DNA of 64,000 nucleotides from the sequence record MW384823.1, one strand, 5' to 3'. Under the pieces are notes generated by a model that saw only the letters and a list, made by a program, of their open reading frames with translations, was not told where the DNA came from and did no database searches. A program made the position numbers and the translations under genes. This document shows, piece after piece, positions 4,501-47,300 of the stretch (the stretch's first letter is position 1; every line of letters starts with the position of its first letter).

Positions 4501-4537
4501 TGCCGTTCTATGCTAACGTAACCATAAGGACTTTGTA

Positions 4538-5335
4538 ATGAACTCAGTTTACGCCCTCCGCCTACCTGGTCAGCTTATCCAGGAGATTGAAGCCCACGAA
4601 CAGAAAAACTTTAGCCGCCCGTCGAACCTCTGGGATCGCATCGTTAAAGTTTTACCGCGTGACGGCGAAATCGCACTGTTGTACGTCATGGCGTCCAGCC
4701 TTGATGCCAACGTGGCTATCATTTATACCCAAAATGGTGTGGAGCAATGTCGTCAGCTGCCGATTAGTGAAAAGGGCTCACTGGGCCAACTGCTGTTCCT
4801 GCACTGCATGACCACCCTCCCGGTCTGGTCTGCGCTGCGGGGTCAGTACGATTTCGAATACATCTACTTCTACGGCCAGAAGCTGTCCAATGATATCATC
4901 GTTGGCGACCAGTCAACCTACCCGCGTTATGTTGAGCGTATCACCCCGCAGGACACCGTCGATGCCGGTGACTACGAATTCAACATGTTCCGCTTCCAGA
5001 TGGTTGGCGAATCCCGTGATCCGCAGAACACTGTAGCGATCCGCGCCGCGATCCGTTGTGTGGCCCGCTCAACTACCCGTGAGCTGTCAACCAACATCAA
5101 CGAAATCTTCCCGGTGCTGCAATACGGCCCACTGATCACGTTCAACTCGTATGTACCGTTCCCGTGCCAGATTCTGACGCCGTACGATAACGAGTGTACG
5201 CTCGGTGCGGCGAAAGAGTACGGCCTGCATGCGCAGGATGCGGTAATCGCCATCAGCGATGAGCGTATTGTCATCAACTCACTGCAAGGTGTGCAGGTCA
5301 TGGACGTGCCGCCGATGACCGTGATGGGGCAATAA
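4538..5335 (+). CDS. Hypothetical protein
   Basis: 265 aa; SD aagga; highly-expressed-type codon usage; followed by a terminator. Confidence 0.7.
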   Translation: MNSVYALRLPGQLIQEIEAHEQKNFSRPSNLWDRIVKVLPRDGEIALLYVMASSLDANVAIIYTQNGVEQCRQLPISEKGSLGQLLFLHCMTTLPVWSALRGQYDFEYIYFYGQKLSNDIIVGDQSTYPRYVERITPQDTVDAGDYEFNMFRFQMVGESRDPQNTVAIRAAIRCVARSTTRELSTNINEIFPVLQYGPLITFNSYVPFPCQILTPYDNECTLGAAKEYGLHAQDAVIAISDERIVINSLQGVQVMDVPPMTVMGQ

Positions 5336-39211: not shown

Positions 39212-39219
39212 TGAAATGG

Positions 39220-39250
39220 CCTCACCTTCGGGTGAGGTTTATTTTTTTTT
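39220..39250 (+). terminator. Intrinsic terminator
   Basis: cctcacc-TTCG-ggtgagg plus T-tract. Confidence 0.8.
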
Positions 39251-39988: not shown

Positions 39989-40033
39989 GAAGATTGTTTT
40001 CTCCCTCACATTTTAATCTATAAGGAGTATCTC

Positions 40034-40618
40034 ATGTACAATTACGTTGTGTTGGGCCGCAAAGGTAGCATCGTCAGATTCGTCTTTAAATCTGACCCAC
40101 CTGCCAAGCCGCGGGCGTTGGATTTAGCGGGCTTCGATTATAAAGGCATCCGCAAAGGCGTACAGCTGGACTTCGTCGGTGATGTGAAACCGGAGAACCT
40201 TTTGTATTCTGGCGATGTGAAACCGAGAAAGCTTGTGGCCATCGGTAAGAAGAAACCCGCGATGACTGCAAAAGAAAGCAAAAAGGCATCGAAAGCTAAC
40301 CCGATTTTCGTCGTTGTTAAACGCGTGAAACAGGTCATCGAATATAAGATCTGCGGGGACGAGTCTGCGGAACTGTTAAACGAGACTCTGAAGATTAGCC
40401 TCGCCGGTTACGACTACAGAAAGCTGCGTAAGGACATGACCTTCCAGTTTGAAGGCGGTAAGATTGCTGCGGAGAATATTCGCTACTGGCCGTTCCGCGG
40501 TACTTCAAATAAGCTGCCGCTGCCAAAGCTTGAAGAAGTTGCACCTAAAGCGAAATCCGCTGCGGTGTCCAAGCGTGGTGCCACACCAAACGTGTCTATC
40601 CTGCGTAAGCACTTCTAA
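40034..40618 (+). CDS. Basic early protein with internal tandem duplication
   Basis: LAGFDYKGIRKGVQLDFVG...ENLLY versus LAGYDYRKLRKDMTFQFEG...ENIRY. Confidence 0.7.
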   Translation: MYNYVVLGRKGSIVRFVFKSDPPAKPRALDLAGFDYKGIRKGVQLDFVGDVKPENLLYSGDVKPRKLVAIGKKKPAMTAKESKKASKANPIFVVVKRVKQVIEYKICGDESAELLNETLKISLAGYDYRKLRKDMTFQFEGGKIAAENIRYWPFRGTSNKLPLPKLEEVAPKAKSAAVSKRGATPNVSILRKHF

Positions 40619-40625
40619 TCAGTAC

Positions 40626-40662
40626 GTCCTACTCCTTCGGGAGTAGGACTGTTTTATTTTTT
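40626..40662 (+). terminator. Intrinsic terminator
   Basis: gtcctactcc-TTCG-ggagtaggac plus T-tract; 20-bp core identical to 12329-12348. Confidence 0.8.
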
Positions 40663-40673
40663 AAGGACTGTCG

Positions 40674-41201
40674 ATGACTACTTTTATTGCGGGCAAGAAC
40701 TACCTCGCCGCAGACCGTGCGGTAATGAAAAACCGAATGGTATTTGAAGATGCGAAGATTCGCACTATCAAAGGACGCATCGCGTACTTCTTTGGTTCAG
40801 AGCATCCCACGCCAGACGAACGCAAGTTGCTGGAAAAGAATATCTACGATTACATCTTCGGTAAGCAGAAAGCCCAAGAGGCAGCAGAGCTGTGGTTGCT
40901 GCACTTCATGGAAAGCAATACGCTGGTTGTGATGACCCGCAAGAAGACGCTGACCTTCAGTGCTATCTCACGGCTTGCTGCGTGGTCCCCGGAGCTGGGT
41001 GCTCCAACCCGCCATACAGGACTTACCGTAACCGAAGACCTGCTTGAAACACCTGTCGTTTATGGTTCGGGTGCAGAGTTGGCACGGGCAGGATGGGCAT
41101 GCGGATTACCGCCTGAGAACATCATTCTCATGGTACAGAAAATAGACCCGATGTCAGGGCATGGCTGCGATGTGGTTTACAGAGAGGACTTGCGAAAATG
41201 A
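40674..41201 (+). CDS. HslV/proteasome beta-subunit-like Ntn (Thr) peptidase
   Basis: Starts M-T-T with SD aagga 6 nt upstream; LAAD, DAKI, YGSGAELARA and IDPMSG reproduce the T1/D17/K33/GSG/D..SG pattern of HslV and proteasome beta subunits. Confidence 0.7.
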   Translation: MTTFIAGKNYLAADRAVMKNRMVFEDAKIRTIKGRIAYFFGSEHPTPDERKLLEKNIYDYIFGKQKAQEAAELWLLHFMESNTLVVMTRKKTLTFSAISRLAAWSPELGAPTRHTGLTVTEDLLETPVVYGSGAELARAGWACGLPPENIILMVQKIDPMSGHGCDVVYREDLRK

Positions 41202-41746
41202 GTACCGTTTCTATTGCTGGTTTCGTTGTGAATGGTGTGGTCTACGTAAACACCGCTGTTCAATCCATGCACCTGATAGCACCGTACAACCCTGAGGCGG
41301 GATTCGATAAACTCGGATGGTGGTTCCCGAACGATGGGCAGGATAAAATTAGTGACATCTTGGTTAATGGGGACGATTGCGAACGCCATGAGGACATTAC
41401 CTACTCCGGTAGTGTGCTGCGTCATGATGGGCGATTCTACGATGTTAAATTAGCTGGACCAAACTATCGATTAGTTTTCTCCCATCAACCAGCCCCCGTG
41501 ATGGTCTTTCCAGCCGACACGGAATCGTCGTTTGTGGCGACCTTTATCGAGCACCTGTCCATGCACCCCGATTTGGACACCGAAGGGCCTGAGTGGAGCG
41601 CAGAGCGTATCACGAAAATATTGTCGTGCTTCGGAGGCTGCCACAACTTCAAACCATTCATGACTCTGGATGAACTCAAAACCAAAGTCCAAGCGATGCC
41701 AGAGTGTAAATTAGCGCCTTTCCCCCGTCAAAGAAAGCCGGAATAA
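41198..41746 (+). CDS. Hypothetical protein
   Basis: 182 aa; ATGA coupling to the HslV-like gene. Confidence 0.65.
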   Translation: MSTVSIAGFVVNGVVYVNTAVQSMHLIAPYNPEAGFDKLGWWFPNDGQDKISDILVNGDDCERHEDITYSGSVLRHDGRFYDVKLAGPNYRLVFSHQPAPVMVFPADTESSFVATFIEHLSMHPDLDTEGPEWSAERITKILSCFGGCHNFKPFMTLDELKTKVQAMPECKLAPFPRQRKPE

Positions 41747-41807
41747 GAACGCGCGGATTTATAACAGCATCACCCCTTTTAATGACAAACACAAGAGGAT
41801 TATCAAC

Positions 41808-42419
41808 ATGCAATCATTAGCTCGTGCGTTATCCCCGGTTTCGTTTCCGAAGTTCACTGGCCTTCAGGTTTACATGCTGCAAGCCACCGCGGGAACACTC
41901 GCGGCTGTTGCTCCTGAGGGTTACCGCGACATCGTCAGCGATATGTTGAGAAGTGGCAACATTCCTGCGGAAACTCAAGTCTGGTTGACGGTTGATGAGT
42001 CGAACGTCAAGGCCGGTAAGAAACAACGTCGCGGCGGTGCACACATCGACGGTAACTTCGATCTCTTTGCAAGCGACTGGTGTACCGGAACTAGCGGTTG
42101 GTTGAATGGCGGTCCGGGTCGTGAGCTGACACTTGAAGAACACCGTCGGAGTTATCAAGAGTTCGGTGGCGGGATGCTGATTGCGTCTAACCACGCTGCA
42201 TGTCAAGTGTGGGAAGGGGAAGTTGATGGTATTCCGGGTCAAGGTGGTGATTGTGAACATCTGCGTGACCAACTGGAAACGCTACCGACCTACTTGATGG
42301 AAAGTAACCGCGCATACCTGACGAATTCGCAGTGTGTGCACGAGTCGTTACCGTTGAAGGTTGACTTCCCGCGGCAGCTTGTACGTATTACATTATCCGA
42401 GCAATACAAATTTAACTAA
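41808..42419 (+). CDS. 2-oxoglutarate/Fe(II)-dependent dioxygenase-like protein
   Basis: GAHIDG (HxD), CVHES (distal H), RQLVRIT (2OG-binding R). Confidence 0.7.
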   Translation: MQSLARALSPVSFPKFTGLQVYMLQATAGTLAAVAPEGYRDIVSDMLRSGNIPAETQVWLTVDESNVKAGKKQRRGGAHIDGNFDLFASDWCTGTSGWLNGGPGRELTLEEHRRSYQEFGGGMLIASNHAACQVWEGEVDGIPGQGGDCEHLRDQLETLPTYLMESNRAYLTNSQCVHESLPLKVDFPRQLVRITLSEQYKFN

Positions 42420-42445
42420 TCTAAATCCACAAAGAGAATCAGAAC

Positions 42446-43108
42446 ATGGCGAAGCAAAAGAAAGCACGGAACAAAAAATATAACCCGCAGCAAGCCCATG
42501 CAGAAACAGCCCGCATGGTGGTACAAAATGCCTTAGCCCGCATTTCCTTTATTGGTGCGTCTAACCGACGCATCCAACCGTACGGCGGTCGTGGATTCCA
42601 GTATACCGTCAGTCGTCCTGTGCGCGTGACAGTCTCCGCCGCCTTGGCAGAAACATTGTTTGAAGACCCGCGTACGTGGACGGTATGGATGGCGCATTAT
42701 GCCGTGAATCCTGAGGGCAACCTTGAAGTGGAATCCGGTGTGTTGTCGCTTGACGAGTACACGCTGACGGACTTCACGGAAAACGTGGATAAGTTAGTCG
42801 AGCACATGAAGCCGGAGTCAATGGTTGGCAACCCGGACTACGTAGGCTACGCGTTCTTTGCTTCGCCAAATGAGCGTTACGATTTTACGCACGACACCAC
42901 TGATGAACGTTTGATTGAAAATTTCATCGCATCCGGCGTTCTGGAAAAGGAAAACCATCTCCCGCAGCATGTCCTGAATGTCACCAAAGAAGAACTTATC
43001 ATCATGCTCATGGCAGACCATGTTAAGTTCGACACTAATATCAGTTATCACCAGCGCGGCGAAGGTGATGATTATCGCGTCGCTGACAAGCAAGTTATCG
43101 GAGAGTAA
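42446..43108 (+). CDS. Hypothetical protein with basic N-terminus
   Basis: 220 aa; MAKQKKARNKKYNP. Confidence 0.65.
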   Translation: MAKQKKARNKKYNPQQAHAETARMVVQNALARISFIGASNRRIQPYGGRGFQYTVSRPVRVTVSAALAETLFEDPRTWTVWMAHYAVNPEGNLEVESGVLSLDEYTLTDFTENVDKLVEHMKPESMVGNPDYVGYAFFASPNERYDFTHDTTDERLIENFIASGVLEKENHLPQHVLNVTKEELIIMLMADHVKFDTNISYHQRGEGDDYRVADKQVIGE

Positions 43109-43111
43109 GAA

Positions 43112-43678
43112 ATGAAGTTCTGGGAGCGTTTTTGTCGCTTGTTTAAACATGTCCCTGAGGTGCAGACCGACGGTGACCGTTATACCCAAATCGTGCGTGA
43201 CTACTTCAATGCAGGTAATCACAACGTCGTGGAACTCTGTGATGCAATTGGCATGACACCACGCTCATTGTACTTTGCGGTTAACGACGACAACGTGCGT
43301 GCAAACATCCTGCCCCGCCTCCCTGAAAAGATGCGGATGGAATTGCGTGATGAACTGACCGCGCGAGCGTTCAGCCGTCAAGCTGTCTCGTTAATCCGTC
43401 CGAGCACCGCGAAGTACGATTTCGATAACCTCAATGAGCTGATGGCGCACGTACACGAATTGTTCGAAACGTACCGTCTCGAGCGTGGCGAGAAAGTGGA
43501 CCCCTCTATCAAGGCGTACATCCACTCCCTTACTCCGCGTACGGTACGTATCGCTTTCGTGGGTAGCGGTCACGAATTCAACGTCGGTATCATTGAAGGC
43601 ATCAACGTCGTTCAGCAAAACCTGCTTATGGTGAATTATGGAAAACTTAACGCCCGTGGAAATCGTCAATGTTTTTAA
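43112..43678 (+). CDS. Hypothetical protein with possible HTH
   Basis: VVELCDAIGMTPRSLYFAV resembles an HTH recognition helix; overlaps the HslU-like gene by 41 nt. Confidence 0.5.
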   Translation: MKFWERFCRLFKHVPEVQTDGDRYTQIVRDYFNAGNHNVVELCDAIGMTPRSLYFAVNDDNVRANILPRLPEKMRMELRDELTARAFSRQAVSLIRPSTAKYDFDNLNELMAHVHELFETYRLERGEKVDPSIKAYIHSLTPRTVRIAFVGSGHEFNVGIIEGINVVQQNLLMVNYGKLNARGNRQCF

Positions 43679-45374
43679 CCGTTATGTCCACGGTCAAGAA
43701 CTGGCGAAAAAGATGTTGGCGATTGCTCTGCGTAACCGCGTACGGGTAGCGTTGCTGCCCCTCGGTGAACGTAATAGCGTTCGCAAACAGAATCTGTTGT
43801 TACTGGGGCCAACTGGCTGCGGTAAAACGGCGCTGATGCGCGTACTGAAAACGCAATTTGGGTTACCTGTCTTAGAGCAGGACATGACCGGCTTTTCCGA
43901 GACGGGCTATGTAGGCCGTAATCTCATCACGTTGGGTTCGGACTTGCAAACTCTCACGCGCACGATCGCTTTGCCGGATTGGTACGTTGAGATGCGTACC
44001 GGTATGCAGCTTGAAAAAGACGAGCAGCGTTATACCCGTGAAGAACTCAAGCAGATCGAAGCAAGAGAGTACGAAGCGGAAAGCGCTGCGCGGCAAGCCG
44101 AATGGCAAGCTAAGCGCGATGCTAAAAAGCAACACGAGCAAACCCTGAAAGATTTAGGCGTGTTCCCGGATGACGATACCTACAATCACTATCGCATGGT
44201 CTACTACATGCGTGCGTTTTTGGTCGGCTATCACGCCATGAAGAACCTGCCCTACGATGTCATTGATTTCGCTGACATTGAAATGATTCAGGGGCAAAAA
44301 CTCATTGATGTCGCGAACAAAGTTGTTGGGCTTATCGAGAAGGTGGCGGGTAAACCCATCAACAGTATTGATGACCTCAATGAAGATTTGAGCGAGAACA
44401 CCGAAGAGATGATGGAGAACAATCCCGCGCTGATGGGTGAGTTCATGGGTCTGGTAGGCTACAACGAAGTGTTGGAAGTTATCATGACTCTCGGTGTTCA
44501 AATGCTCAACAGCAATCCGGTGGCAGCCTGCGTCTCATCGGCTGATTGGTACGACGTTGCCCATTCCTTCGAGCAAACCGAATCAGAAGACCTGCCGCCG
44601 GGTATTGCTTGGCGTCCGATGGAAGCGACGGAGTTTGCGCTCTACATCTGTGTGATGTTGGCGCGTGACCCGGAAGGTCTGGAAGAAGTCTTTGAAGATT
44701 GCGATGACTTCACCCGCTTTGCGGACGAGAAGTTGTGGAGTTATAAAGTGCCCGAGCCCGAAGTTGTGCAACCCAAAGGGAAGCGCAATGTGTTGTCGAA
44801 GAAAGATCTCGATAAGGTAGCGAACTGTAATGGGCGCGACTTCGTTGAGAACTTCGGGGTGGTGTTCTTAGATGAGTTTGACAAGCTCATTGAAACGGAT
44901 ACCACGGGTCGGACACACGTCTCCCGCAGCGGTGTGCAGCGCAGTCTGCTCAAGATGGTAGAAGGTGGTCTCTACGCTGGGATTGACACCACGAACATTC
45001 TGTTTGTGGCGGCCGGTTCTTTCGCAGAAGCCCCTGTGACCAAACTGATGCCGGAACTGCAAGGTCGTTTTACACTGCGTGCGGAACTGGAGCCACTTGA
45101 CAAAGAAGCGATGATTGCGATTTGTCGAATGGACAGCAGCGAGTTCCATGCGATGGTTCGTCTCCTGCGAATCGAAGGGGTGGTGGTCAATTACGACCTT
45201 GACACCTTTGAGTACATTGCAGAGAAGACCGTTGAAGCGAACTCGGTCGATGACCTCGGTGCACGTCGTTTAGCTGCGATCGTGGAAGCGTTATTCCAAG
45301 ACGCCTTGTACGAACCTAACAAGTATATCGAGAAAGGTTACGATCTGACCGGTAAAACCTTGAGGAAGAACTGA
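43638..45374 (+). CDS. hslU: HslU-like AAA+ ATPase (unfoldase)
   Basis: LTPVEIV, GQELAKKMLAIALRNR, GPTGCGKT, ETGYVG, VFLDEFDK, GVQRSLLKMVEG, TTNILFVAAGSF, PELQGRF, GARRL. Confidence 0.9.
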   Translation: MENLTPVEIVNVFNRYVHGQELAKKMLAIALRNRVRVALLPLGERNSVRKQNLLLLGPTGCGKTALMRVLKTQFGLPVLEQDMTGFSETGYVGRNLITLGSDLQTLTRTIALPDWYVEMRTGMQLEKDEQRYTREELKQIEAREYEAESAARQAEWQAKRDAKKQHEQTLKDLGVFPDDDTYNHYRMVYYMRAFLVGYHAMKNLPYDVIDFADIEMIQGQKLIDVANKVVGLIEKVAGKPINSIDDLNEDLSENTEEMMENNPALMGEFMGLVGYNEVLEVIMTLGVQMLNSNPVAACVSSADWYDVAHSFEQTESEDLPPGIAWRPMEATEFALYICVMLARDPEGLEEVFEDCDDFTRFADEKLWSYKVPEPEVVQPKGKRNVLSKKDLDKVANCNGRDFVENFGVVFLDEFDKLIETDTTGRTHVSRSGVQRSLLKMVEGGLYAGIDTTNILFVAAGSFAEAPVTKLMPELQGRFTLRAELEPLDKEAMIAICRMDSSEFHAMVRLLRIEGVVVNYDLDTFEYIAEKTVEANSVDDLGARRLAAIVEALFQDALYEPNKYIEKGYDLTGKTLRKN

Positions 45375-45571
45375 TGCACATGCTCATCGTGTCAATCGTG
45401 GCCATCTTTTTAATTCTCAACTTACTGGGCGTCGGTATCGGTAAATTGTCAGTCCGTTATAATTGGTCTTTCTGGGCGATGCTGACGGTAGCGTTGTTCT
45501 TCGGCGGTCTCATCGGGAACGTCTACTTCAGCTACATCATCCGACCCCTTTACCAGAATCTCGGGAGTTAA
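45374..45571 (+). CDS. Small two-TM membrane protein
   Basis: 65 aa; two hydrophobic runs; TGATG coupling to hslU. Confidence 0.7.
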   Translation: MHMLIVSIVAIFLILNLLGVGIGKLSVRYNWSFWAMLTVALFFGGLIGNVYFSYIIRPLYQNLGS

Positions 45572-45574
45572 CTC

Positions 45575-46303
45575 GTGGACGATATTCAGTACCCCATGCG
45601 GGTAGAGCGTGTACAGAAATCCTACTCACAAGCCGGTAAGACGGTAAGTGAAGGAAGTATACATGCGTCAGGTCAGGTGTTGTGTCTGCCGAAGTCTGCA
45701 TTTGTAGAGGGTGCGGACTGGCAGCAGATTTTCCGTCGTTGGCTCAACTGTTCTGCCCGCTGTGAAACCGCGCCGGTTCGCCACGCAAATCATCAGTACC
45801 CTGAGTCGCTTTTCCGAACCTCGAAGATTCATGAGGAGAACGTGTGCGCGACTCTATTGGGTGGCAGTATGGATGTGAACGGTGAGTACGTCACGCTTAC
45901 CACCAACGTGGTGCCATACGGCCCTTATGGGGATAAGTTGGCGACGTACATGCGTGAGCAGAAAGAGTTGATTATCGTTCCGCGTTTTATCAAAGACAAG
46001 GACGATAAAATCACCGGTGTGCCCGCATGGGATTTGTTGTTACCATCGGGTTGGGATGTCGTTCCGTACGTGTACAATGACGTACAGGACGAAGTCTTTG
46101 TCGGTGAGCTGGCGTACTTCAAAGAGAAATGCAAAGCCAACGGTGTCAGTTGGTCAATGCACTATTCTGACTCGGACGACCTCTGGCATTTCGTGCTAGA
46201 GTCATACCACTCCATCGTCTGCTTTGAAGGCGAGAAGAAAAAGTTATGCGATGCGTTGGAAGACGCGACGGCGTATGTTGACAGTTTAGATAACAATGGA
46301 TAA
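45575..46303 (+). CDS. Prohead-protease (T4 gp21/phiKZ gp175)-fold protein lacking catalytic His/Ser, with C-terminal extension
   Basis: RCETAP, KIHEENVCATL, VPYGPYGDKLATYM, IVPRF, AWDLL align with gp21 GELNHP, GPGDKLAANI, GVSSRG, VDAV. Confidence 0.6.
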   Translation: MDDIQYPMRVERVQKSYSQAGKTVSEGSIHASGQVLCLPKSAFVEGADWQQIFRRWLNCSARCETAPVRHANHQYPESLFRTSKIHEENVCATLLGGSMDVNGEYVTLTTNVVPYGPYGDKLATYMREQKELIIVPRFIKDKDDKITGVPAWDLLLPSGWDVVPYVYNDVQDEVFVGELAYFKEKCKANGVSWSMHYSDSDDLWHFVLESYHSIVCFEGEKKKLCDALEDATAYVDSLDNNG

Positions 46304-46781
46304 GAACATGGATAAGAAGACTGAACGTAATCTGCTTGAAATCACGGGCAAGGGCGAAGACAACAACGGCAAGTTTTATTCCGTCGTGTTGTTAGACCAG
46401 TCCAAGATTAACGCTAATGGTCGCCAGTATAACGGTGACCTTGCGCATCTGGTGCGTGGTATCAAGCGTATGCCGCGGTTGTTCTGTGAAGTTGACCCGT
46501 ATCACGATTACCGCTTCCAGTTCCCGGTAACCGATGATCGTTCTGTTTCTGGGCCGTGTACGGTCGACATGAAAAACGTCTGTGCCTCTATCGAGAATAT
46601 CCGTCACGATAAGATGAACCAGCGTGTATCGGCTGAGCTGCGTCCGTGGGGCCCGCAGGCTTCGATGGTGCGTGATCTGTTGGACGGGGTCAACCAGAAC
46701 GTGACCTTCGGGATGCGGGCGTTGGCAACCCCTGACGGAAAGATTGACAAAGTCATCACATGGGACTTATTACCAGAATGA
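46296..46781 (+). CDS. Prohead-protease (T4 gp21/phiKZ gp175)-fold protein lacking catalytic His/Ser
   Basis: INANGRQY, FCEVDP, TVDMKNVCASI, RPWGPQ..MVRDLL, NVTFGMRA, ITWDLLPE. Confidence 0.65.
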   Translation: MDKNMDKKTERNLLEITGKGEDNNGKFYSVVLLDQSKINANGRQYNGDLAHLVRGIKRMPRLFCEVDPYHDYRFQFPVTDDRSVSGPCTVDMKNVCASIENIRHDKMNQRVSAELRPWGPQASMVRDLLDGVNQNVTFGMRALATPDGKIDKVITWDLLPE

Positions 46782-46978
46782 ATATCGTCGAATTGTTCTA
46801 TTGGTTTGTCATGGTGTTAAGCGGGTATTTCCTTATCGTGTTTGCAATTGACATGGTTAAGGATTTACTCAAGGGCGACCTGATGGGTGTGCTCGTTTTG
46901 ATCGTGTTTGCTATCATCGTCTGGAATGTCCACCGTTGGGCATTCGTAAGACTGGTGCCGATGCAGACACTGTTCTAA
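46778..46978 (+). CDS. Small two-TM membrane protein
   Basis: 66 aa from ATG 46778 (ATGA coupling); two hydrophobic runs. Confidence 0.65.
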   Translation: MNIVELFYWFVMVLSGYFLIVFAIDMVKDLLKGDLMGVLVLIVFAIIVWNVHRWAFVRLVPMQTLF

Positions 46979-46991
46979 TGAAAAAAAGCTC

Positions 46992-47012
46992 AGATAGATA
47001 TTATCTTGATGA
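46992..47012 (+). promoter_or_regulatory. Early promoter motif, copy 7 (variant)
   Basis: AGATAGATATTATCTTGATGA. Confidence 0.6.
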
Positions 47013-47084
47013 GCTTTCCATTATTAGTTCCAAGGAAGGTGTGTTTTACAATTACAATAAATTAAAATAAATAAGGAGTCCATC

Positions 47085-47261
47085 ATGGATAAAATTTATA
47101 TCGTTACAGCAATCCTCTTCACAATCGCTTGCTTACTGAGCTGGCGTGTCGCATCAAACCAAAAGCGTCGTAAGTGCCCACCGGGTGCTATCGCGTTTGG
47201 TGTTCAAGCCTGTGTCTATGGTTTTGTGGCCATCTACACCGGTGCGAAGTATTTCTTCTAG
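47085..47261 (+). CDS. Small two-TM early membrane protein (58 aa), not in ORF track
   Basis: Hand-translated MDKIYIVTAILFTIACLLSWRVASNQKRRKCPPGAIAFGVQACVYGFVAIYTGAKYFF*; SD aaggag; flanked by promoter motif and terminator. Confidence 0.75.
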   Translation: MDKIYIVTAILFTIACLLSWRVASNQKRRKCPPGAIAFGVQACVYGFVAIYTGAKYFF

Positions 47262-47270
47262 CAGTAAAAA

Positions 47271-47300
47271 AGGGGCACGGAAGTGTCCTTTTTCTTTTTT
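47271..47300 (+). terminator. Intrinsic terminator
   Basis: aggggcac-GGAA-gtgtcctt plus T-tract. Confidence 0.7.

Follow-up and report, generated by a model that had tools for sequence, protein, structure and literature searches.

The window analysed here, 64,000 nucleotides of record MW384823.1 (window coordinates are record coordinates minus 62,000), comes from Erwinia phage pEa_SNUABM_43, a jumbo phage of the genus Machinavirus with a genome of 241,904 bp; over bases 40000-46000 the identity to this phage is 100%. Two of its genes, at 40674-41201 and 43638-45374, had been read in a preliminary description as the peptidase and the ATPase of a phage-encoded HslUV-like protease. The first gene product is, by sequence profile and by structural model, a strongly diverged member of the HslV/proteasome-beta N-terminal nucleophile (Ntn) superfamily with Thr1, and the second is, by its sequence, an HslU-family AAA+ ATPase with motor and pore loop intact. 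Both family assignments are made with high confidence. Do the two constitute one HslUV-like machine? This is plausible, with a chance somewhat below even. The constant companion of the peptidase is not the ATPase but a partner gene (41198-41746) that follows it at every locus in 10 lineages.

The HslV-like peptidase

The peptidase reading frame opens with ATG-ACT-ACT at 40674, the earliest start codon possible in frame, and AAGGA (40663-40667) is found 6 nt upstream; the M-T-T start with a Shine-Dalgarno sequence and no propeptide, as originally proposed, is thus borne out. Methionine aminopeptidase specificity leads to removal of an initiator Met before Thr, and in the peptidase this would expose Thr1. 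In mature numbering, the residue set comprises T1, D13 (in LAAD), K27, G130-S131-G132 and D157-x-x-S160-G. All parts of the signature first described (LAAD13, K27, GSG and D.SG) are therefore present, and the Asp, Lys and GSG align with HslV counterparts. A family alignment of 25 members from at least 10 lineages, with identities of 22-98%, shows T2, T3, D14, G131, G133, D158 and D166 (numbered with Met) to be invariant in all 25; the G-S/T-G motif is also strictly kept, and the Lys column (K28) is kept in most members. Strict conservation across 25 sequences with identity down to 22% suggests that the active-site residues are under selection, and the 40674 product is predicted from its sequence to have peptidase activity.

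How does this sequence relate to recognized families? The lone peptidase has no match in Pfam, NCBIfam or PDB, and misses the HslV and proteasome thresholds (PF00227, TIGR03692). It does match its own PHROG, phrog_23394, and phrog_1040, ‘peptidase HslV family’ (E=5.6e-10). A profile of seven sequences performed no better against PDB and Pfam than the single sequence. When 1.84 billion representatives were searched exhaustively with a profile, just 23 proteins passed E<=0.001. The majority are short and begin M-T-T (one starts M-K-L-T-T), and two of the 23 touch PF00227. The 23-sequence profile finds Trypanosoma brucei HslV (PDB 4hnz) over 142 columns with E=1.2e-6, and 14 of the best 15 matches are HslV or 20S beta chains. 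In the alignment to the T. brucei protein, D14 pairs with the GD motif, K28 with CK-LRR and the GSG with GSGG. Comparison of the family with the single Salmonella HslV by hhalign covers the N-terminal 46 columns only, at a probability of 85%.

Structural modelling points in the same direction. An AlphaFold2 model from the 23-25-sequence alignment has a predicted local distance difference test score (pLDDT) of 89.5 and a predicted template modelling (TM) score of 0.82; an earlier model from seven sequences was poor (pLDDT 60). Confidence is lower in residues 96-120, a long insertion. The top 50 Foldseek matches in PDB are all HslV or 20S beta (probability 1.00, TM 0.5-0.6), with the best at E=5e-7 and TM 0.59, and the model has the proteasome-type alpha-beta-beta-alpha Ntn fold. 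The comparison with HslV and proteasome beta that was proposed at the outset thus gives a confident Ntn fold, with HslV best by both sequence profile and structure. BFVD contains the proteasome-type fold in many phage proteins. A narrow peptidase alignment returned only phage Huxley from IMG/VR, and tblastn of family member P0017 gave no matches in the phage collection.

Bacterial HslV (ClpQ) forms a double hexameric ring with an internal chamber. The phage peptidase shares with it a length of about 175 amino acids, the Met followed by Thr-Thr without propeptide, equivalents of Asp17, Lys33 and Ser124/129-Gly, and the proteasome-type Ntn fold. It differs in that identity is only about 13-20% and curated HslV/Proteasome models are unmatched; in its own insertion at 96-120 and a family-specific C-terminal D-x-x-Y-R-x-x-L motif; and in gene context, where an overlapping gene of about 180 amino acids is always next and hslU does not abut.

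Phage proteins of PHROG 1040, ‘peptidase HslV family’ (SPN3US-type gp001, EarlPhillipIV gp123), belong to the same superfamily, and EarlPhillipIV gp123 is a syntenic orthologue of the peptidase, of the same type (B-type). The 40674 product falls in its own small subfamily, phrog_23394, apart from the more canonical gp001-type. Outside the window, beside a tRNA cluster, pEa_SNUABM_43 itself carries a further HslV-like gene of this more canonical type, gp001 (record 1-486, 161 amino acids). It reads MTTIAYDG...D...K...AVGSGG, with MTT, D, K and GSGG kept, and far outscores the B-type against an HslV-type profile. The gp001-type is a branch separate from the B-type, with pairwise similarity limited to the GSG region.

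The ATPase and the partner gene

The HslU-like motifs named in the preliminary description are all present in the ATPase: Walker A GPTGCGKT (57-64), the GYVG pore loop (90-93), Walker B DE (412-413) and GARRL (541-545). To these can be added an Arg finger, R477. The motif columns are invariant in an alignment with Salmonella HslU and three other phage lineages. The protein consists of an AAA+ N-part (residues 1-106), an I-domain (about 107-392, nt 43956-44813) and an AAA+ C-part (393-578). PDB HslU 6kww is the best match (E=3e-46), in two pieces (1-106 and 393-562), with ClpX far lower.

Likeness to bacterial HslU (ClpY) extends to Walker A/B, GYVG, the Arg finger, the GARRL sensor 2 and the position of the I-domain. 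The insert at this position, however, has about 286 amino acids, about twice the roughly 130 of Salmonella and Escherichia coli HslU, and by itself has no homologue in PDB or Pfam. In HslUV, as biochemistry and structures show, the C-terminal segment of HslU inserts between HslV subunits and activates HslV. Bacterial HslU has this activating tail, whereas the phage ATPase, aligned with Salmonella HslU, does not: its C-terminus (...TGKTLRKN) aligns about 15-24 residues short of ...EDLSRFIL. The ATPases of Caitlin and EarlPhillipIV equally lack the tail, and that of Erwinia phage RAY terminates in an unrelated extension.

RAY gp116, also an HslU-family ATPase and from a chimallin-encoding Erwinia phage, is the sole relative with experimental data. 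As a GFP fusion it co-localizes with phage DNA in the nucleus (PMC10299810). Its identity to the ATPase described here is about 32% over about half the protein, and it differs in its I-domain and in a long C-terminal extension.

The gene that directly follows the peptidase has an ATG that overlaps the peptidase stop codon (ATGA) at 41198. Partner profiles detect a homologue of about 170-185 amino acids directly 3' of the B-type gene at every locus, in 10 of 10 lineages. The partner itself has no detectable homology to any family, the peptidase family included, by profiles or hhalign. The idea of a degenerate proteasome-fold subunit was rejected, as hhalign gave no signal. Matches to the RAD23 ubiquitin-like domain (E=0.1) disappeared with a 10-sequence partner profile and are attributed to chance.

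Linkage of the peptidase and ATPase

The set of ATPase-bearing phages comprises 37 records at E<1e-40. HslV-like genes of both types occur in 10 of these, the B-type only in nine and the gp001-type only in 12, and none was detected in six; tblastn misses divergent copies, and a negative by this method does not prove that a gene is missing. An HslV-like gene of one or both types is thus present in 31 of 37 records and the B-type in 19. The phage collection also includes bacterial Salmonella contigs (AGRM01000004.1, AFYI01000005.1) with host hslVU, which inflate counts of ‘phage’ HslU.

The order peptidase, partner, a few genes and then ATPase at 2.1-2.4 kb is found in four of nine assessable B-type lineages: the Machinavirus core, Derbicus/CR5/Phobos, the metagenomic L093/94, and L100. 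Peptidases of the lineages that share this order have just 22-36% identity to the 40674 product. This recurrence, the 31 of 37 records and the predicted single transcription unit argue for coupling.

What mechanism might join these proteins? The 40674 product would be an active, self-compartmentalizing Thr1 peptidase, which would work with the product of the translationally coupled 41198-41746 as assembly factor, gate or adaptor. In lineages with the ATPase 2.1-2.4 kb downstream, the latter would unfold substrates and feed them to the peptidase, docking on it by a mode other than the canonical HslU tail; if the machine is real, docking must differ in this way because the ATPase lacks the tail. 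This whole chain is offered tentatively, and appears a little less probable than its negation. A more doubtful proposition is that nucleus-forming jumbo phages have, in the peptidase and the partner of about 180 amino acids, a proteasome-like module of two proteins not described before; the tail-less ATPase with its large I-domain would engage it through different docking, and the phage would thereby possess a regulated machine for protein degradation. The departures from HslUV visible in the sequences are the missing tail, the doubled I-domain, the obligate partner gene, the four-gene spacer and the presence of two peptidase paralogues.

A number of observations weigh against a single peptidase-ATPase machine. 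At the level of the proteins, the lone peptidase misses the curated thresholds, the ATPase scores 194.4 bits against TIGR00390, under the equivalog cut-off of 362.45, and the activating tail is absent. At the level of gene arrangement, four unrelated genes part peptidase from ATPase, whereas Salmonella hslV abuts hslU directly with a gap of 9 nt, and linkage alone is weak evidence because these phages largely keep their gene order anyway. Each gene also occurs without the other. In L010, L095/96 and L101, peptidase and partner are present and no HslU-like gene lies closer than 10 kb. Conversely, the B-type is missing and the ATPase present in Caitlin/ChrisDB, in Wellingtonvirus and in four jumbo phages of Salmonella, one of them Seoulvirus MET_P1_082_240; the neighbourhood of the ATPase in Kwan and in Salmonella phage MET_P1_082_240 yielded no HslV-like gene. 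In Caitlin the peptidase site is taken by a different gene, with the ATPase and flanks retained. Finally, gp001, as a second HslV-like gene in the same phage, could equally be the partner of the ATPase, and it is the 41198-41746 gene that accompanies the peptidase without exception. Caitlin gp123, at the syntenic site, was considered as an HslV-like protein and rejected, its family being phrog_7413.

Agricanvirus (the RAY group) also has both genes, which counts in favour of coupling: a relative of the B-family, found via an intermediate query, lies 36 kb from the HslU-like gene. Against the single machine, the aligned N-terminus of the relative in RAY reads M-S-L and it has CSGNG for GSG, so Thr1 is not kept; in pEa_SNUABM_43, by comparison, the genes are 2.4 kb apart and Thr1 is kept. 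The RAY relative is gp56 (L097 3983-4531), whose annotated start is six codons further upstream, and is followed by the overlapping gp57 (4528-5040); the overlapping downstream gene is a weak match to the partner profile. RAY gp117 and gp118, directly 3' of the HslU-like gene, were tested as HslV-like proteins and rejected.

Co-occurrence of the two genes, originally proposed as a check, gives a mixed picture: the same order is found in four of nine lineages and some HslV-like gene in 31 of 37 records, but each gene is also found alone. The broader claim that the phage carries both halves of one protease has partial support, and the targets suggested for it, among them defence proteins and the nucleus shell, are speculative. 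Both families are real and lie in one run, yet the absent tail, the four-gene gap, the occurrence of each gene without the other, the presence of gp001 and the invariance of the partner as neighbour do not fit with it.

Somewhat unlikely, but the strongest alternative, is that the peptidase and its 182-amino-acid partner constitute an ATPase-independent module in the manner of Anbu and BPH, which are stand-alone proteasome homologues. The HslU-like protein would then be a separate unfoldase or chaperone, possibly in the phage nucleus, and proximity would reflect gene order only. Consistent with this are the partner as sole invariant neighbour of the peptidase, the three lineages that have the module and no nearby ATPase, the Wellingtonvirus ATPase without any detected HslV-like gene, and the lack of an activating tail. 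RAY adds a relative without Thr1 and, in gp116, an ATPase found with phage DNA in the nucleus (PMC10299810). On the other hand, the same order and spacing are found in four deeply diverged lineages, and a gene not seen within 10 kb may still lie elsewhere in the genome; tblastn also misses divergent copies, and the RAY copy was found only with an intermediate query.

Could the ATPase pair instead with gp001 or host HslV, with the B-type peptidase in another role? The canonical features of gp001 (MTT, D, K and GSGG) and its far better HslV-type profile score argue for this, as does the presence of the gp001-type in 22 of the 37 ATPase records, including the 12 without the B-type. However, the gp001-type is common in phages without this ATPase: it occurs in 72 phage records, many without any HslU-like gene, and those that lack this ATPase include SPN3US, the SPFM series, Erskinevirus and Klebsiella phages of 40-50 kb. 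In addition, the Derbicus group has the ATPase and the B-type with no gp001-type detected, and, whether the target is gp001 or host HslV, canonical docking is just as hard to reconcile with the absent tail. Such a pairing is decidedly improbable. A reading of the 40674 product as an Ntn-fold remnant with a structural or regulatory role, catalytically dead or non-proteolytic, is very improbable, since T2, T3, D14, G-S/T-G and D158 are strictly kept down to 22% identity, although no curated family threshold is reached, the 96-120 insertion is modelled with lower confidence and the RAY relative has lost Thr1.

Should peptidase, partner and ATPase prove to be a degradation machine, phages that form a nucleus would have control of protein turnover through a proteasome-like enzyme of their own, with a non-bacterial mode of docking. 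Otherwise the phage would carry an Ntn peptidase module that stands alone, and the unfoldase would be separate. This too would be of use in annotating these genomes, given the labels that the two genes bear in close relatives (‘DnaA’ or ‘heat shock protein’ for the ATPase, ‘hypothetical’ for the peptidase).

The gene run and previous annotation

The principal features in and around the gene run, all on the + strand, are as follows.

40626-40649, +, terminator-like hairpin with 10-bp stem and TTCG loop, then a T-run; upstream edge of the gene run
40663-40667, +, Shine-Dalgarno-like AAGGA, 6 nt 5' of the peptidase ATG
40674-41201, +, B-type HslV-like Thr1 Ntn peptidase, 175 amino acids, QQO90609 (predicted from profile, AlphaFold2 and Foldseek)
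41198-41746, +, partner gene, 182 amino acids, fold without detectable homology; ATG overlaps the peptidase stop (ATGA)
41808-42419, +, hypothetical protein, 203 amino acids, phrog_8970; retained in Caitlin, which lacks the peptidase
42446-43108, +, hypothetical protein, 220 amino acids, phrog_6965; homologue 5' of the HslU-like gene in Caitlin and EarlPhillipIV
43112-43678, +, hypothetical protein, 188 amino acids, phrog_11712; 41-nt overlap with the ATPase start
43638-45374, +, HslU-family AAA+ ATPase, 578 amino acids, QQO90614 (PDB HslU match, motor motifs)
45575-46303 and 46296-46781, +, two tandem Peptidase_S80-like (phiKZ-type prohead protease) paralogues; same run, directly after the ATPase gene
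47268-47293, +, strong terminator-like hairpin and T-run; likely downstream edge of the run

The peptidase and ATPase genes share a strand and are separated by 2,436 nt, in which four co-oriented open reading frames lie, and a scan for hairpins followed by T-runs found no terminator-like site between the two genes. The preliminary description, which had placed the ATPase about 2.4 kb downstream in a co-oriented run with no terminator between, is accurate on this point, as the strong hairpins only bracket the run. Judged from the hairpin/T-run sites at 40626-40649 and 47268-47293 and from the lack of any between the two genes, 40674-47261 is likely to be one transcription unit of eleven co-oriented open reading frames bounded by terminators.

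Recognition of the HslV-like/HslU-like pair is not new, because the depositors of MW384823.1 annotated both genes in GenBank, 40674-41201 (QQO90609) as ‘putative HslV-like ATP-dependent protease’ and 43638-45374 (QQO90614) as ‘putative HslU-like ATP-dependent protease’. The pairing, earlier put forward as the main point, had therefore already been made. A characterized phage-encoded HslUV-type protease was not found in the literature searched. In close relatives the pair carries other labels: the ATPase is called ‘putative heat shock protein’ or even ‘putative DnaA protein’, and ‘hypothetical’ is the name given to the peptidase. The paper on the sister phage pSal-SNUABM-04 reports HslV genes at two loci and ‘no HslU’ (PMC7823757). 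In MT710307.1, the record of this phage, the gene at 106144-107874 is HslU-like, 91% identical and annotated ‘putative DnaA protein’; this label is an annotation error that hid the peptidase-ATPase pair.

Placement of the phage in the chimallin-encoding, nucleus-forming group, also part of the preliminary description, is correct, given that Huxley, another Machinavirus, is among the chimallin-encoding phages listed by Prichard et al. (2023) and that the pEa_SNUABM_43 genome has several split RNA-polymerase genes.

Some minor features of the region can be added. Hairpins at 39218-39239 and 40626-40649 are alike, both intergenic with a GC-rich stem, a TTCG loop and a long T-run, and this design is probably the standard terminator type of the phage. 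The 194-amino-acid open reading frame at 40034-40618 matches the 104-position phrog_12339 profile twice, which points to an internal tandem duplication; Caitlin lacks a homologue of it, as it does the peptidase and partner genes. Both Caitlin and EarlPhillipIV retain a homologue of 42446-43108 on the 5' side of the HslU-like gene; compared with the peptidase, this gene is thus the more faithful companion of the ATPase. The S80-like gene at 45575-46303 is missing from Parshik, and in Caitlin and Kwan small S80-like genes are neighbours of the HslU-like gene. The run also contains short hydrophobic open reading frames at 45374-45571 (65 amino acids), 46760-46978 (72 amino acids) and 47085-47261 (58 amino acids), which have the look of single- or double-pass membrane proteins.

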